The notes beneath the pieces are model-generated. The model was not told the origin of the DNA. It made no database searches and saw only the letters and a program-made list of their open reading frames with translations. A stretch of 64,000 bases of DNA from Takakia lepidozioides. Lineage: Eukaryota; Plantae; Bryophyta. Positions 23,895 through 49,800 of the stretch are shown here, one piece after another. Location: NCBI GenBank assembly GCA_030704615.1, contig CM060731.1, forward strand, positions 44,640,001 to 44,704,000, in the 5' to 3' direction. The position numbers were made by a program, and so were the translations under genes. Numbering within the stretch: the first letter of the stretch is position 1; each line of letters begins with the position of its first letter.

Positions 23895-25091
23895 TTAGGC
23901 TATTGTACTAAAACTAAGAGAGCCAACCACGCTGCTACAATATTCTACATGTGTCTTTGGATTGAGACGCAGCCATCGCCACTCTGCTTGCACCAAGTCG
24001 TACACCACAGTTCGGGATGTTCCGCCTGCAACCAAGACTACGAGATCACAATACAACACCGGCTGTACTGAATACCACCCAGCAAACTCTGAAAAATAAC
24101 TGTGGTCACGCATTTCATCAGGTAGTCTCGCAATCTCCTTCAGCTCCAAAGTTGAGACCTTCAACTCCCATAGTAGAATCGCTCTTGGTTCCTCCCTTGC
24201 TCTTGCTCTCCTATCAATGCCAACTACTAATACGCGCCCCCGACTCTCCAAAAGGTGTGGCCGGTCTAAACAAGTGGGCATCTCTATTGGAACCTCCCTC
24301 CATACACCACAACGAATGTCGTAAGCCAACGTGCAATCCCCAATGAATCGTCTGCGAGATGTAGTCTTGAAACCCAATACGTATAATAAGTTGTCGCAGA
24401 TCGCATGTGTTGAAATGGTCCGATAACCAACGTTTAAGGAGTCCGGCAAGTTTCCTGTTCCATTCCAACACTTGGAAATCGAATCATACACTAGCGTCCT
24501 CGAAGGTCCGTTTATTATATCCTCCTCCTCATGGGTTATCATAATAATTTTGTACGCCTTAGTACATCGATCTACTACAAGTTTTGTTAGGGGCGAGCGT
24601 CGACATTTGTAAGGAAAATCTGGAAGTTGGATGCAGCACTTCAAGAGAGGGTTGCAGACACAATATATATGCGACTCCTCGGACGTACTTGATCGAATCA
24701 AAAGCAGTCCTGCATCTGCAGCAATAATGCTGTCAATGAAAATCTCTGTCTTTATAAATCCCTTTGTGCGACGCAAGTGGTCTTTCAGGAATTGAATGTC
24801 GATTGCGTGCAGTAAGTTGCTTATGGGATCAAAAACTGTGATGTAGCTCAAACTGTCAACCGAGATGAAGTACAATGGTTCCCCTTCACCAGGGGCAAGC
24901 CCAGACGAGCGATGGCTGATGCAGAGCTGAAGGAAACTTGGAGATGGCAGGAGAGAATTCCATCTCTTGCACACTGACCGTAGCCGGCACAGGTGTGGAT
25001 ACGGCAAGCGTACTAACACTGTGTGCGCTACTAACTCCAAAGGCAGCTCAGGCAACTTCTGGATCTCTTGTGGCTCCACACTCTCATCCAT
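23895..25091 (-). CDS. F-box protein with kelch-like/FBA C-terminus, intronless, 398 aa
   Basis: LPELPLELV...LVRLP...L.RLRSVCKRWNSL F-box; GLL...VCNPL.....LP and VYDS....W repeats. Confidence 0.9.
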   Translation of the reverse strand: MDESVEPQEIQKLPELPLELVAHTVLVRLPYPHLCRLRSVCKRWNSLLPSPSFLQLCISHRSSGLAPGEGEPLYFISVDSLSYITVFDPISNLLHAIDIQFLKDHLRRTKGFIKTEIFIDSIIAADAGLLLIRSSTSEESHIYCVCNPLLKCCIQLPDFPYKCRRSPLTKLVVDRCTKAYKIIMITHEEEDIINGPSRTLVYDSISKCWNGTGNLPDSLNVGYRTISTHAICDNLLYVLGFKTTSRRRFIGDCTLAYDIRCGVWREVPIEMPTCLDRPHLLESRGRVLVVGIDRRARAREEPRAILLWELKVSTLELKEIARLPDEMRDHSYFSEFAGWYSVQPVLYCDLVVLVAGGTSRTVVYDLVQAEWRWLRLNPKTHVEYCSSVVGSLSFSTIA

Positions 25092-31279: not shown

Positions 31280-32301
31280 TCCTGGGTTTCAAAACACTAC
31301 ATGCATCATATATTCAATTACATGCCAATCAGGCCTCCCTCCATCTTTGATGAGGAAGGGGTTTGTGGGACTCCAATGTGAGTTACTCCTTTTTCTTTGA
31401 AAAGACGTGTGTCTGCAGGCATGTCCTTTCCATCCATTTCTTCCCCAGATCAATGGAATAGGTGGGGATTTCTGAAGTCTGACAAGATATTGGACATGTA
31501 TTTATTGCTTGTATTCTTGAAGTAATTGAGAAAGGCATCAGTTGATAATATCTGTAGCTGGTCATTTTTTGGAGCTCGTCTAGATAACCTATGGAAGTCA
31601 GTACATCATGGTTTGTATTTGTCAATATGTCACCCTTGTGACAGTCCTTTCCCTACAGAGCAGACAGGTAAGTTGTGTGTAAGTGATGTAATTCACTGCC
31701 CTCTACTAACAGCCTCCTACCTTGTGTTGGTAATCATATCCCGAGCATATCCCAGCACAAAGGGAACCATACATCTTCGATGTTGGTTGGTAGGCGTGGT
31801 CCTTCTGTCACGATCAAACTACAAATAGTAACTGCTAACAGACTAAGCACAAGCTCAGCAAGTTGACCTCCCAACCATGAGACCTCTATTGCTACTTGCT
31901 AATTGGTGCTGAATCTCTACTACTTCGGGAACCAACGAGTCCTTAACACGAGGGATGTGGCTACTAAACAAGAAGTTAGTAGGATTCTGGCTATTAATGA
32001 AGTGAGTGGAGAGTTGGTGTGACTATCTCCATCTCTGAAGCTCCCATCTTGTTGCCTCCTGGAGACTGCTCTTGAATTCTTGTTGTCATTTCTGGTATCG
32101 GAATACGAGTACAAAGACACATCATTTAGTCTGTGTTCAAGAAGTCCAGTTGCAGTTTAATATTAGTTAAGTACTTGGCCCTGTTCAGACAGTTGCACTT
32201 GAAGAAATAAAATATAGAAGCTGCACCTAGTTTACTGCCGGAATGGTTTCAACTAAGGCTTGTGTTGATGCTTTGGATCAATGATCGGCACCTAAAATTA
32301 C

Positions 32302-32460: not shown

Positions 32461-32861
32461 CTACTCAAACGGATAACTGCATTCGCAAATTCTTGTTATC
32501 TTAACATTTGAAAGATGGTGAGAACCGCCAGTGTGGAAGTGCTCTCTCTCTCATATACAGTCGCCATTCTCGAATCAGATTAGTAGTAAAGGCAGAACAG
32601 ACGGTCATCATTGGGGATGCAATGACTACAGCCTCATTACCCCGCAATGAGAGCAATAAACAACAATGGGAGAGGTACAGGGAGAAGGATCCCCATCTCT
32701 GGACACAAAAGACACCCGCAGCCGTGTGAGAGATTGATGGAAGACTATGACACCCTCTTCTACTCCACGTCTCGCAAACATGTAGCGAGCAGAGCTTCTG
32801 ACCGAGAGAGCCGTGGAGGCGGATATTTGGGCTGCGCGTGGGCCTCCCGACAGAGGCTCGT

Positions 32862-33004
32862 ATGGCCGTGGGGGTATTGGGGAGGTCAAAGAACTGCATT
32901 CGTGTGGGCAGGAGGTCTGGAGAAGGCAGTGCAATATGCCTACCGCGACCGAACATGCGTGGCCTCTGGATTCAACGCATCAATGCAGCACTCGTGAGCG
33001 CGGG
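32862..33004 (+). pseudogene. rpl20: Frameshifted relic of nuclear-encoded mitochondrial ribosomal protein L20 exon (also candidate exon 1 of the PPR gene)
   Basis: GRSKNCIRVGR, LEKAVQYAYRDR, MRGLWIQRINAA and TRERG in shifting frames, collinear with bL20. Ends at a GTGAGT donor. Confidence 0.85.
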
Positions 33005-35943
33005 GTGAGTTCCTTCTCACTGTTCCTCTCCATCATGGGCCCAATGGACTCATTTCTAGGTGTGACCGGGATTGCCATAGCGTTGGTTACCCAGTAATTT
33101 CTTGTCTCTTCTCCTTAGCGGAAGCTCTCACGTCATGCGCCAGGGCCTTTGGATTGAGAGAGGGTCAAATTCCCCTTTGGTGAAAGCACACGGAGCTGGC
33201 ATACCATGTCAAGCACAGCCTGGTGCCGGAGCGAATATGGATGTATGCCATGGAGCTCCAAGTGAACAACACAACAGGTACTGATTTGTTTTGATGGTTT
33301 TCACTCAAACTGCTACAGATTTAAGTTGTTACATGTACATGACGGTTGTGTTTTCTGCGAGTTTGAGTATCCCGTCTAGTAATTAGGATTTTTTAGTCCT
33401 GCAGGATGGCAAGGTTGAATCGGGAAGAGTTGTATGTTGGACATCAGACTGGCGGAAGGGGTAGCACCTCCACCACCGCCACTTCTTTTGAAAAAGACGG
33501 AGTCAACAATAAATTTTCTGCCTCTTTTGGCGAGGTGAGGACACTATGTAAGGCAGGACGATTGAAAGAGGCGCTGCACGTCTTGAACCAAACAATCATT
33601 CCGGCTGACTCCAATACTTATGTCTGTCTCCTGAAAGAGTGCATCAATATGCAAAGCCTGGCTGAGGGAAAGAAGGTGCACGCCCACATTAAGCAGAGTG
33701 GATTCAGGCCAAACATCTTTGTACTCAACAACCTTCTCAACATGTATGCCAAGTGTGGAAGTGTGGTGGCTGCACGTGAAGTGTTTGACAAAATTCCTGA
33801 ACGAGATAAATTTACTTGGACTATAATGGTGGCAGGATATGCTAGGCACGGCTGTGGTAGGGAGGCTTTCAAGATCTATGAGCAAATGCAACACGAAGGG
33901 GTGATGCCCAATAGGGTCACCTTCATTTGCATTCTCAAGGCATGTGGCAGCCTGGGAGCCCTTCAAGAGGGCAAACAGGTCCATGCTGACATCATCAAAG
34001 CTGGAATTGCTCCAGATATCATTCTGGAGACTGCCCTTGTCGATATGTATGCCAAATGCTGGAGCATGAAGGATGCACGCCACGTGTTCGACAATATGGC
34101 TCAAAGAAATGTTGTTTCTTGGAGTGCAATGATTGCAGGGTATACCCAGCAAGGGTGTAGTAGAGAGGCTTTTGAGATCTATGAGCAAATGCAACTGAAA
34201 GGTGTGACACCTGACAGGGTCACATTCATTTGCGTACTCAATGCATGTGCCAGGCTAGGAGCACTGGAGAAGGGCAAGGAGGTGCATGTGGACCTTGTCA
34301 AAGCTGGAATCCCCTTATGTGTAAGCTTGGAGAATGCCCTTGTGGATATGTATTCCAAATGTGGCAGCATAAAGGATGCACATCAAGTGTTTGATCATAT
34401 GGCTCAACGCGATGTGATCTCATGGAACTCCATGATGGGAGGATATGCTCAGCAGGGGCTTGGTAGCAAGGTTTTCGAGATGTATGAGCAGATGCAATGG
34501 GAAGGGGTGACACCTGGCAAGGTCACATTCATTTGCATTCTGAATGCCTGTGCCAGCCTTGGGAGCCTGGATAAGAGCAAAGAGATCCATACTGACATCA
34601 TCAAAGGTGGGCTTGTGCCAGATATTATGCTGGAGACTGCCCTTGCTCATGTGTATGCCAAATGTGGGAGCATGACAGATGCGCGGCAAGTGTTTGGCAA
34701 TTTGGCCTATCGAAATGTGGTCTCATGGAGTGTGATGATTACAGGATATGCTCAGCATGGGTGTGGTAGGGAGGCTTTGAAAATCTATGACCAAATGCAA
34801 CGGGAAGGGGTCATGCCTGACAAGGTCACGTTTGTTTCTGTTGTTAATGCGTGTGCCAGCCTAGGAGCACTGGAAAAGGGCAAAGAGGTCCATGCCGACA
34901 TCAGGAAGGCTGGAATTACGTCATACATTAGTTTGGAGAATAGCCTTGTTAATATGTATGCCAATTGCGGGAGCATAAAGGATGCTCGTCAGGTGTTTGA
35001 CAATGCGGTTCAACGAGATGTAGTCTCTTGGAATGCCATGATTGCAGGGTATGCTCGCAATGGGTGTGCTAAGTTGGCCCTCCAGCTATTTGAATTGATG
35101 CAACATGAGCGCCTGAAGCCAGATGGTATCACCTTTATATCAATACTCTCTGCATGCAGCCATGTTGGCTTACTGGATGAAGGCCACCACCACTTTGATT
35201 CCATGACTCGAGATCATGGCCTGACTCCTGCAGTGGAGCATTTTGGCTGCATGGTGGACCTTCTTGGCCGTGCAGGGCGATTGGACGAGGCAGAGGATTT
35301 CATCAATAGAATGCCAATTGAACCAGGTGCTCCGGTCTGGGGGGCCTTGCTTAGTGCTTGTAGAATTCATGGGAATTTGGGGTTGGCTGAATGGGCGGCA
35401 AAATGCCTTCTCAAGTGGGACCCCCAAGATGCGGGAATTTATGTGCTGCTGTCAAACATCTATGCTGCGGCTGGCAGGTGGGATGACAAAGCGAAAGTGA
35501 GGAAAATGATGGAGGACAGAGGCGCCAGGAAGGAGCCAGGATGCAGCTGGATTGAAGTGGACAACCAGGTTCATACATTTGTTGTTGAAGACCAGTTTCA
35601 CCCAGAAATTGGAGAAATTCATGCTCAACTGCAGAGACTGTCTGAGCCGATGAAGGAGGCTGGATACGTGCCTGACAACCGCTTTGTGTTGCATGATGTG
35701 GAGGGGGAGCAGAAGGGGATTTCTCTTGTCCACCACAGTGAGAAGCTGGCCATTGCTTTTGGGCTGATCAGGACACCCCCTGGGACGCCAATCCGCATCA
35801 TCAAGAACCTACGGGTGTGCGGTGACTGCCACACTGCAACCAAATTCATCTCAAAGATTGTTGCACGAACAATTGTTATGCGGGATGCCAACCGCTTTCA
35901 CCACTTCCAAGATGGGGTTTGTTCTTGTGGGGATTACTGGTGA
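32862..35943 (+). CDS. PLS-class PPR-E1-E2-DYW (DYW:PG) C-to-U RNA editing factor. Main exon 33405-35943, proposed upstream exons 32862-33004 and 33119-33277 (946 aa)
   Basis: 17 P/L/S motifs, PGCSWIE box, HSEKLA and CGDCH deaminase motifs, terminal DYW. Upstream exons splice in frame but are less certain than the main exon. Confidence 0.93.
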
Positions 35944-35952
35944 AACAAGCCT

Positions 35953-36185
35953 ATGTATGCAAAATGTGGCAGTATAAACCATGCACATCAAGTGTTCAAC
36001 AATATAGCTAAATGAGATGTGGTGTCATGGAGTGCAATGATCACAGGATATGCTTTGCATGGGGTGCAGGGTGGAGACTTTGGAGACATGAGCAAATGGT
36101 GCATGAGGGGCTGACACCCAACCAGGTTACGCAATTCATGTGCGAGCCTGGCAGCCCTGAAAAAGGGCAAAGAGGTTCATTGTGA
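35953..36185 (+). pseudogene. Degenerate S-P-L PPR motifs immediately after the DYW stop
   Basis: MYAKCGSINHAHQVFNNIAK*DVVSWSAMITGYALHG...ALKKGKEVH, with stop and deletions. Confidence 0.85.
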
Positions 36186-36239
36186 CACAACGAATGTTGG
36201 AATTGTATAGACAAATCAATTCTCAACTGGGATTCACAG

Positions 36240-43982: not shown

Positions 43983-45438
<1,456 letters not shown>

Positions 45439-46189: not shown

Positions 46190-46700
46190 GAATTTGCACG
46201 ATGGTGGAACAACCGCAATCGCAAGGTGTGGCTCTTAATGTAGGATGTGAAGAAGTTTGTCCATCCTGCAAATGTGGCTCTTGGCTCCTGTCATGACCCT
46301 CTCCATCATTTGGTATTCTTCCTGATGTTTACAAGGTTCTTGGGAGAGTCAGCTTGGTCTTAGCAGGTCGTGTTTCAATCTCCGCCTGCTTAGCTGCACC
46401 ATGGTGGTTCGCACATACCAAACCGACATTACCTGACTACAGACACAAGCAGCACACACGAGGTCCTTTTGGGTTGATGGTGGTTAAATCCCCCATGGGT
46501 CATGACACAAGGTCAAGGACAATGTGGTGAGGGCACCTTCTTCTTTGACCTATTTCAGCCTGTTCATCAGACTCGGCCCTTACAAGTTACTGCCGATGTG
46601 GCAGCAGTAAAGTATCCAAAAAAAGATAACAGAGATGAGGAGAAGCTTTGGAATGAACACTTTTCTCACCCCAGTCAATGGTGGGACAATGGAGACAAGT
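46190..46700 (+). pseudogene. Degenerate fragment with OSB-type PDF motifs (organellar ssDNA-binding)
   Basis: WWNNRNRK, KPTLPDYRHK....WVDG..NPPWV and EEKLWNEHFSHPSQWWDN, frameshifted. Confidence 0.6.
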
Positions 46701-46855: not shown

Positions 46856-49800
46856 TTATGCATAGACCACTGGCTTCAGTACTCCCACATATGGAAGACT
46901 CCGGAATCGTTCAGCAAAGTCCATTCCATATCCGACTACAAAACTGTCCGGACACTGCCAAAGCGAACAACAAAAACCATATGTACTATGTCAATAATTT
47001 ACATTCGGGCCCACTGCACCCGGGTTGGGCACATCTGAACCTGCATCACTGTTCTCCTGGGAGAAACCCACCCCTCCCTTGGTCCCTTGGCTACTTCTAC
47101 ATTCACTCAAACTGGCTTTGGCTGCCATCTTCTAATATTTTGAAGAGAAGAGGCAAGACCCCAAATTAAACTTTATTTCGTGATACACTCTGCTGCGAAA
47201 TGCCACAAAGGCCAAAGGCCCACATAGAAACTTGGCTAGCATTCCAGATCAGCCAAGAGTCTGAGCATGCACACAACATGAAGACACATCTGACAAGTAA
47301 AAAACACTGACCCAAGAAACAGATGCTCCCACACCAGCACCACAGGTATGTTAAACCAGTCGGCCCACTAAAGATAGCAATAGGACCCAAAATGGCTTTC
47401 AGGAAAGACTACTGACAGGAGGTAGCAGCCTCAAGGATACACGCCCTTCCTGAGACTTGGTGTAGGATTGCTCCTGTAGGATTGCTCCTGCCAAAGATCT
47501 CTCTCTCTCTCTCTCTCTGCTTCGGCGAAACAGGGGCTGTGTGGATCATATCTTCACTCTAAGCCAGATTATCCAGGGAAGGAAAAAAGAAGGGAAACCC
47601 ACACTTGTCTTTTTCCTGGATGTCAAAAAGGCTTATGACACAGTGTGGAGAGATGGCCTATGGTTCCGCCTCTGGTCTTGTGGGATCAAGGGAAAGATGT
47701 GGAGAGTTGTCCACAACTTGTATGCTCACACCAAAAGCTGTGTCACTGTTAACGGACAGAAGTCCAACTTCTTTGACATAGACCAAGGTGTAGCTCAAGG
47801 ATGTACTCTCTCCCCTTTGCTCTTCAATGTTTTCATCAATCAACTCCTGGAGGATGTGGAAAGTGAGGGATTTGGGTTAAGGGTGGGTGATACCACCATA
47901 CCAGCCCTTATGTTTGCGGATGACTTCGCAGGCATAGGGGAGACTCCAACCAATCTCCAGGAGTTCATTGATTGCGTGAAGAGATACTTTGATCTTTGGG
48001 GGCTAGAGGCTAATGTCAGCAAATGTGCAGTGGTAGCATTCAACGACAGAGGAGAGGGAGGAAGTGATCTTAAGTGGCAGTGGGGTAGCCAAGAGATCCC
48101 GGTCCTCCCTTCCTACACTTACCTGGGCGTTGAGTTCTCCTCCAATTGTAATTGGGATGCACATATCCGGAAAGTTGTTCAAACTGGCAAGGGCAAAGCT
48201 CTGGGGCTCACTAAATTTTTCCACTGCAGAGGGGTCAACTCTGACATTATTAGACCTGCCTTGGAGTACGGATCTGCTATATGGGTTGATAACTCCAACC
48301 AGGCTAAGTCTCTAGAATCCATTCAAGTGGGGGTGCTTAAGGAGTGTATGTCAGCATGCTCCAAAACGGCCAATGTGGCTGTTCGGGGTGAGTTTGGCAT
48401 TCCGTCCTTAAGCTCCCGACGAGATGAATTCAAGGTCAGATGGTGGGGTCAGCTGCAACATATGCCCAACACCAGATATCCTAAATTAATCGACTCTATA
48501 TCTTGGAAACAGGACCGCCCTGTCAAACAGGCTAAGTCCTGGCAGAAGAGAGTAGAAGAGATCCTCAAGGACCTGGACCTGGATCCGCAAGTCTTGACCC
48601 TGCTGGATAAATCTGACTTAGAGGCTGTAGTGTCCAAAGCCATGTCTGTTGCCATGAGATTGTCTGATGAAAATGAAGTTAGGCAGAAAACTTCCCTGAA
48701 CTTGTTTCCAGTCTGTGACATGGGGGAGGACATCTTGGATGACCTCAAGGGTCTACCCACTCTCGGCACTAGACTGAAATTTAAACTCAGGGCAGGAAGC
48801 CTACCTTTGAACAGCAAACAGAAGCAGAGAGGAAAGGGAGAGTGCAATTGCCCGTTGTGTGGGCAATCTGAAGACAGTATTCATTTTCTGATACACTGTC
48901 CGGGGTTCTCTCACCAAAGAGACGCTCTCTTCAAATCTATCAAGGGAATTGTGCCTGTACCCCTGTTTACCAACTTTGAAAGTCTCGAGGCTGAGCCAAA
49001 TGCCCAGGCCCTCCTGAGGCCTAGTTTTTGGGCAAATCACACACAGCAGATTGATGCTTGTGTGAAGGGATTTCTAGAGGATATCTGGAAAACCCGGATT
49101 AATTCTTTATATGGAGGTAAGTCTTACTACCAACGTCAGCCCCTGACAGAGGTAGGTTCTGTCCCTTTTGTTCCCGCTCAAACTGGGCGCGGGGTCAATG
49201 GCCACAAGGCTACGGCAAACAACGTCTTATGAGCACATTCTCTCTTTCTGCTGTTTGCTTTCTGTGGTTCTGTGGTTCTGTGTTGTTGTACTTGTGCCTT
49301 GGGGGCCTTGGCCTCCTGCCAAGTTGTGAATTTCTGTGTCTTTCTCCTTTTCACTATCGAGACCTCAAGAGCTCAGGAGGCACTCCATCTCCAAGCAACA
49401 TCTGGGTGTATCTGAGGTTGTTTTGGTTTTCTCTTCTTATTCTACTGTCTACCATAGGCCTGTCTCTGACAAATTTCTCCTTCAGTCTAGACCTACAGGA
49501 TCCAATGGCCCATGCGAGATCCTGTACACCTCATAGATTCTTTTTCTCTCTCCGAGCTTCCCATAAAGTCTCTTTCTATTGTGAAATTGGGTGCTAGAAA
49601 CCCCCATGGTGTTTCGAATCATAATGTCTATGCCATCCTACATCAATTTCCTGTGCCGTGTTGATTAGCTGAATGAATTATACCTTGGGGGGCTGTTCAT
49701 AGGCTCTGGGGGGGTTAGTTCTCTGTAGAATATGCTCGTAGAAGTACGCTCCTTGAGGAACTCATAGCCAATGTCCGCACTTTCTCACCTAAAAGCTACA

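Follow-up and report, generated by a model that had tools for sequence, protein, structure and literature searches.

Results

An intact PPR-E-DYW gene and the segments upstream of it

We analyzed a 64,000-nucleotide (nt) stretch of nuclear DNA of the moss Takakia lepidozioides (GenBank assembly GCA_030704615.1, contig CM060731.1, forward-strand positions 44,640,001 to 44,704,000), hereafter called the window, in whose own numbering all positions are given. The subject of this study is a gene for a pentatricopeptide repeat (PPR) protein of the PPR-E-DYW type and its 5' region, where a relic of a mitochondrial ribosomal protein gene and an eroded exon precede the main coding sequence. An earlier note on this DNA had proposed that the relic was captured as the first coding exon of the gene.

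An intact open reading frame (ORF) of 845 amino acids was found at 33406-35943 on the forward strand, identified by its Pfam domains and by the catalytic signatures in its translation. Pfam searches returned PPR (E = 2.5e-88), the E motif (2.1e-23) and DYW_deaminase (7.4e-44). The translation shows a PLS repeat array, E1/E2 motifs and a C-terminal DYW deaminase with the HxE signature (HSE, in HSEKLA), the CxxCH signature (CGDCH) and a terminal DYW (...CGDYW), as in PLS-class PPR-E-DYW proteins. The closest relatives are at most 55% identical, with a protein of the lycophyte Diphasiastrum being the highest. The exact 845-amino-acid product was absent from the protein collection, and no gene record was found for it or for P0009, P0097 and P0044. 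Whichever N-terminus is made, it would be the organelle-import signal of a site-specific C-to-U editing factor.

A relic of a nuclear bL20m gene lies upstream of the PPR ORF

At 32880-33010 we identified, in three blocks on the forward strand, a frameshifted relic of the type of nuclear gene that encodes the mitochondrial ribosomal protein bL20m. Block 1 (32880-32912) reads GRSKNCIRVGR, in the frame used by the earlier note, and aligns to GRAKNCIRIAR of Arabidopsis bL20m. Block 2 (32917-32952) reads LEKAVQYAYRDR in another frame and matches bL20 chains in the PDB, while block 3 (32955-32990), MRGLWIQRINAA, is again in the frame of block 1 and corresponds to MRGLWIERINAG in Arabidopsis bL20m. 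About 16 nt are deleted between YRDR and MRGLW, and blocks 1 and 3 lie in a common frame because of compensating indels only. These results confirmed two statements of the earlier note, namely that ATG 32862 opens a stop-free frame through the relic (48 codons) and that GRSKNCIRVGR and MRGLWIQRINAA are kept in one frame by compensating indels; the block between them, LEKAVQYAYRDR, lies in the other frame.

The 56-amino-acid piece of frame a was compared with the PDB. The best match was the bL20m chain of the Arabidopsis mitoribosome (6xyw_Aq, E = 1.4e-5), and bL20m of 9evs was also matched, whereas bacterial L20 chains matched at E = 0.065 or worse. Among the 14 PDB matches at E up to 10, no chain was labelled as chloroplast bL20. 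The Pfam family Ribosomal_L20 (PF00453) matched over profile positions 18-69 of 107 with E = 6e-4 and 20.3 bits, which is under the 30.8-bit cut-off. When the blocks were aligned with E. coli L20, the score of block 2 was reached by none of 1000 shuffles and that of block 3 by 2 of 1000. A possible continuation in a third frame, TRERGVSSFSLF (32990-33030, forward strand), is weakly collinear with E. coli L20 residues 67-81, its score being reached by 65 of 1000 shuffles (p = 0.065), and neither Pfam nor the PDB gave a match to L20 past the proposed donor at 33005. If this weak continuation holds, the GTGAGT of that donor may be Val-Ser codons of the L20 frame.

Compared with Arabidopsis bL20m (6xyw chain Aq), the relic has three collinear conserved blocks in which 9-10 of 11-12 residues are identical; unlike it, the blocks occupy two frames, about 16 nt are missing and the C-terminal half is not recognisable. 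As read from the DNA, the relic is a fragment of a nuclear bL20m pseudogene with at least two frameshifts and the 16-nt deletion, and no exon of a mitochondrial-genome rpl20. Land-plant mitochondrial genomes are not known to carry rpl20. The earlier description of a decayed mitochondrial rpl20 exon was thus right as to the type of protein and has to be amended as to origin. Searches for an intact plant bL20m gene whose introns could be compared with position 33005, which were limited by a length window and by word sharing, gave no candidate, and a wider bL20m search returned only P0121 and P0122, which are unrelated repeat proteins.

Just before the relic, the forward strand encodes EARMAVGVLG (32853-32882), which is identical at 7 of 10 positions to KAKMAVMVLG, the linker following the PDF module of the homologue P0063, and which also aligns to FKLAKGFRG of bL20m. 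This segment, not significant alone, is perhaps the point at which older PPR-gene sequence meets the 5' side of the L20 fragment.

A predicted two-intron path joins the relic to the PPR frame

The predicted path consists of exon 1 (32862-33004, 143 nt, from ATG 32862), intron 1 (33005-33118, 114 nt, rich in T and C, with a polypyrimidine tract before the acceptor), exon 2 (33119-33277, 159 nt), intron 2 (33278-33404, 127 nt, T-rich) and the PPR exon from 33405 onward, all on the forward strand. The junctions read GGG/GTGAGT, ...TCTCCTTAG/CGG, CAG/GTACTG and TCCTGCAG/GATG. Because the two upstream exons measure 143 and 159 nt, both junctions are in phase 2. We computed the join of 32862-33004, 33119-33277 and 33405 onward, and it encodes 946 amino acids with a terminal stop only, 101 more than the ORF, so that the in-frame GT-AG path, its phases and its gain in length, as previously claimed, were all reproduced.

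Within 32700-33420, a rough splice matrix gave scores above 2 bits only to the donors 33005 and 33278, and scores above 3 bits only to the acceptors 33118 and 33404. Donor 33005 (2.3 bits) is in the top 4% of GT sites of the window and is the sole donor above 2 bits in about 480 nt upstream of acceptor 33118, the next one upstream being at 32518. Acceptor 33118 (3.1 bits) is likewise in the top 4%, and acceptor 33404, which ends 1 nt before ATG 33406, reaches 9.0 bits and the top 0.08% of AG sites in the window. Composition alternates between exon-like and intron-like across 32862-33404, with GC and T fractions of 0.59 and 0.19 in exon 1, 0.48 and 0.36 in intron 1, 0.54 and 0.19 in exon 2, and 0.37 and 0.42 in intron 2. 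With the sites fixed, the chance that exon 2 is open in the required frame is 0.146; the chance of an in-frame ATG open to donor 33005 is 0.40, and it is 0.068 for the observed length of at least 47 codons. Together, site quality, composition and frame chances are suggestive, not decisive. Judged on its sequence features, the junction between exons 2 and 3 (33277/33405) is probably real.

Exon 2 matches the second half of a PDF module

We compared exon 2 with the N-termini of the fetched homologues, 18 of which contain PDF modules, one to three per protein, that follow the pattern ...FFSDPSQWWDNR..KK.PKYPDFKHK.T.EGLWIDGWLNPSWVKAKMASMALGHIQSG... In the frame of the earlier note, exon 2 reads GSSHVMRQGLWIERGSNSPLVKAHGAGIPCQAQPGAG..., with the core RQGLWIERGSNSPLVKAHGA at 33138-33197. 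The results showed that exon 2 matched P0063 in tblastn (E = 0.003), that it ranked 2nd of 3152 six-frame pieces of the window under a self-built PDF profile, and that it was 37% identical to the liverwort protein P0010 from the exon start (alignment A2). The PDF-match score was reached by 1 of 400 shuffles, and exon 2 is open solely in the frame that is compatible with splicing. The second half of the module is present (RQGLWIERGSNSPLVKA), and the YPDFKHK core and the first half are absent.

The position of the acceptor, though not its phase, agrees with this assignment. Genes of the family have an intron four residues before YPDFKHK, as seen in the liverwort locus L002 (...WWDHRLEK / GSLRYPDFKHK) and, at the same position, in the metagenome contig L003 (...WWDHRSEK / VNANYPDFKHK). 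Acceptor 33118 falls at this place and is followed by GS..., as in liverwort P0010, whose exon 4 begins GSLRYPDFKHK. Because of the PDF match and the family intron position, acceptor 33118 and the frame of exon 2 are most likely ancestral. Neither the profile nor tblastn detected a PDF first-half exon or a family N-terminus upstream of 33118 in the window, and the native partner of this acceptor therefore seems lost. In its repeat, E and DYW architecture, the locus resembles the PDF PPR-DYW factors of Diphasiastrum, Calypogeia and Ceratodon; the exon 2 peptide also aligns to their PDF second half plus linker and is directly preceded by a predicted intron where the family has one. Unlike these factors, the locus lacks the YPDFKHK core and the WWDNR first half, and while the second half is continuous with the PPR exon in the outgroup PDF genes, a 127-nt intron-like segment lies between them here. 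By these comparisons the predicted exon 2 is most likely the family's own exon for the PDF second half and linker, eroded, and native rather than captured.

Contig L003 is an unannotated JGI metagenome contig of 92.7 kb that is plant-like, nuclear and carries a PDF-PPR gene. A prokaryotic gene caller began this gene at the large exon (VNANYPDFKHK); the upstream exon, ...KLWREFFSDPSQWWDHRSEK/GT, can be recognised some 190 nt 5' of that exon.

Three further similarities were considered and set aside. The exon 2 peptide MRQGLWIER was rejected as a second L20 copy: its DNA resembles exon 1 no more than shuffled sequence does, and it is part of the PDF module. A PDF-like reading of exon 1 was not significant (33 of 400 shuffles), and the hexapeptide LWINDR encoded upstream at 32271 was judged to be due to chance.

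Candidate promoter and presequence features

A pair of site-II-like hexamers, TGGGCT and TGGGCC, lies at 32828-32844, 18-34 nt before ATG 32862, and is the sole non-overlapping site-II-like pair within 30 nt in the 64-kb window. The palindrome TGGGCCCA at 33036-33043, near the L20 relic, adds to this cluster of TGGGCY/GGCCCA motifs. In Arabidopsis and rice, site-II elements peak 70-110 nt before transcription starts and are enriched in ribosomal-protein promoters (PMC1832190). As a hint only, the cluster may represent either what is left of the L20 gene's promoter or the promoter that drives the PPR gene. If it does mark a promoter, the usual spacing of 70-110 nt would place the transcription start downstream of ATG 32862.

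The L20-derived N-terminus contains 5 basic and no acidic residues in its first 20, the first acidic residue being at position 21, while the N-terminus from ATG 33406, with two acidic residues among its first eight, resembles a presequence least of all the candidates. By composition heuristics only, the predicted L20-derived N-terminus is the most presequence-like among the candidate starts, a point in favour of the earlier interpretation.

Discussion

We lean, by a little, towards the view that the locus is an old multi-exon PPR-E-DYW gene, of a subfamily with OSB-type PDF modules before the repeats, whose 5' end has been remodelled. The dead bL20m fragment would sit where the family normally has its PDF first-half exon. 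Exon 2, having lost the YPDFKHK core, would still be open in the one frame that splices, through the 127-nt GT-AG intron and in phase 2, into the PPR frame. The protein would start at an upstream AUG, either ATG 33135 in exon 2 or ATG 32862 or 32955 in the L20 relic; a start in the relic would need the GTGAGT of the fragment to act as a phase-2 donor onto the native acceptor 33118. Exon 2 has six ATGs, the first of which, 33135, is in frame with the PPR ORF, and it would for this reason make a poor untranslated leader; a translation start at ATG 33135 itself is a tentative proposal, and we would not expect it to prevail. Since exon 2 appears native to the PPR-DYW family, no new editing factor would have arisen here by exon capture, as had been suggested; rather, an existing multi-exon gene would have been remodelled at its 5' end.

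Several observations weigh against this view. The family intron is in phase 0 in both L002 and L003, whereas acceptor 33118 requires phase 2. The decayed paralogue among the PDF relics at 46400-46700 has a phase-2 GT after WWDNGDK (GACAA/GTATCG), and it may be that the moss subfamily has its intron in phase 2 or that a 1-nt indel is present in each copy. With a short PDF match from which the core has been deleted, the entire 5' region could be dead sequence; in addition, exon 2 and the N-terminus of the ORF both resemble the common family linker, which suggests a patchwork. The matrix behind the site scores is rough and uses angiosperm consensus frequencies. When any GT and AG were allowed within 800 nt upstream, 4069 in-frame, stop-free paths with one or two introns were found; every shuffled control also had such paths (median 978), so the existence of a path alone is no evidence. 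Finally, ATG 33406 has a good start context (A at -3, G at +4), and the Diphasiastrum homologues P0009 and P0097 are modelled from the equivalent Met. As these nearest homologues have N-termini as short as that of the ORF, an added leader is not demonstrably needed.

The last points lead to a gene with a single exon, in which translation would start at ATG 33406, the promoter would lie within the T-rich segment or shortly before it, the L20 and PDF relics would be dead debris from rearrangements in a region rich in PPR sequence, and the splice path would be a coincidence. We regard this as possible, with the balance against it. Besides the start context and the short homologue models, an in-frame TAG at 33394, four codons 5' of ATG 33406, fits a start there, as do the presence of other PPR debris nearby (a PLS fragment after the stop and a frameshifted PDF relic at 46.4-46.7 kb) and the ease with which in-frame paths arise in shuffles. 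However, an acceptor in the top 0.08% lying 1 nt before the ATG would then be accidental, and the resulting N-terminus would be the least presequence-like one. Truncation of the homologue models is also possible: P0009 and P0097 (Diphasiastrum complanatum) begin MASMAL or MASMAF, and because MASMAL occurs internally, as ...WVKEKMASMAL after the PDF module, in paralogues, these models may lack upstream PDF and targeting exons.

The model of the earlier note takes the L20 relic as coding exon 1, transcribed from upstream of 32862 and spliced at 33004/33119 and 33277/33405, and as a whole it seems to us rather unlikely. Its central idea, that the Arg-rich L20-derived peptide would serve as a mitochondrial presequence and that the L20 copy may also supply promoter elements, is doubtful to a similar degree. 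The frame arithmetic is correct, and in the roughly 480 nt before acceptor 33118 only donor 33005 exceeds 2 bits; it fits phase 2, as needed, and is preceded by an in-frame ATG. The peptide has the best presequence-like composition among the candidates, acceptor 33118 seems to have lost its native partner, ATG 32862 is closely preceded by a site-II-like pair (PMC1832190), and presequence capture from other nuclear genes is well documented (PMC8317393). Against these points, the chance of a top-4% donor in range with the right phase and an open ATG frame comes to about 0.06, no more than suggestive; intron 1, at a GC of 0.48, has only a mild intron character and could be L20 coding sequence in decay; and the site-II elements, if they mark a promoter, would at their usual spacing put the start downstream of ATG 32862. 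An L20-like motif was found at the N-terminus of none of the 120 fetched homologues. Exon 2 holds its own in-frame ATG at 33135, and ATG 33406 offers a further start in good context at the Met from which the closest homologues, in models that may be truncated, begin. The patchwork-like resemblance of exon 2 and the ORF N-terminus to one family linker, and the commonness of PPR debris here, likewise count against a functional leader. Co-option of bL20m pseudogene debris as a first coding exon, perhaps with its promoter, with the Val-Ser GTGAGT used as a donor onto an orphaned acceptor, would therefore be an unlikely event on present sequence evidence; if true, it would have rescued a gene that lost its own 5' exons by supplying a new presequence.

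Alternatively, the partners of exon 2 might be native exons at a greater distance upstream, reached for instance from the consensus donor CAG/GTAAGT at 31668, and the L20 relic would then lie inside a long intron. Strong donors do exist 1.4-3 kb upstream (31668, 8.0 bits; 31151, 5.4 bits; 30340, 5.8 bits), but none of them has an in-frame phase-2 ATG, and nowhere upstream in the window was a PDF first half or a family N-terminus detected; we consider this arrangement very improbable.

That targeting sequences can be captured from other nuclear genes is well established (PMC8317393). What the locus has in common with such exon shuffling of presequences is an upstream fragment, still recognisable, of a second nuclear gene whose product is mitochondrial, with usable splice signals, a GT-AG intron and compatible phase. 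As predicted from the DNA, in-frame joining is possible and would give a basic, acid-poor N-terminus. Unlike in those cases, the donor is a frameshifted pseudogene piece of a mature ribosomal protein rather than a working presequence exon, and the recipient is a nuclear PPR gene rather than a transferred organelle gene. Takakia has about 2000 PPR genes, which spread mainly by dispersed duplication (PMC13386178), and patchworks like this locus are therefore to be expected. Should the L20-derived exon prove to be expressed, the locus would clearly exemplify how the remains of a pseudogene for a basic organellar protein can become a targeting peptide, and would show how one of the roughly 2000 PPR genes of an early-branching moss (PMC13386178) survived without its original 5' end. 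Should it not be expressed, the locus is an ordinary one, in which a PPR gene is surrounded by fragments of genes. In both cases the analysis shows how cheaply in-frame splice paths can be had from sequence, and the PDF-PPR-DYW family gains one more eroded member.

Other features of the window

A decayed PLS-type PPR fragment lies at 35944-36210 on the forward strand, 1 nt after the DYW stop. It reads NKPMYAKCGSINHAHQVFNNIAK and, after a stop, DVVSWSAMITGYALHG..., with further stops and frameshifts, and its DNA matches the repeat units of the gene itself at about 78% identity. Its sequence suggests an insertion into, or an unequal exchange with, an older PPR gene.

The relic of a second PDF-PPR gene was found at 46400-46700 on the forward strand. 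One of its PDF modules is frameshifted (LPDYRHK..., WLNPPWV), and it then carries the first half of another PDF module (KLWNEHFSHPSQWWDNGDK; E = 2.4e-6 with our own profile), ending GACAA/GTATCG. Downstream of this relic, at 47541-49232, lies an ORF for a non-long-terminal-repeat reverse transcriptase (Pfam RVT_1, E = 3e-25).

Between 38025 and 38496, direct repeats of about 100 nt (90-98% identical) are combined with inverted arms of 107 nt (93% complementary), an arrangement resembling a small foldback element or miniature inverted-repeat transposable element. A zinc-type alcohol dehydrogenase fragment is present at 44334-44894 on the forward strand, and an intact 398-amino-acid ORF for an F-box / KIB1-like beta-propeller protein lies at 23895-25091 on the reverse strand.

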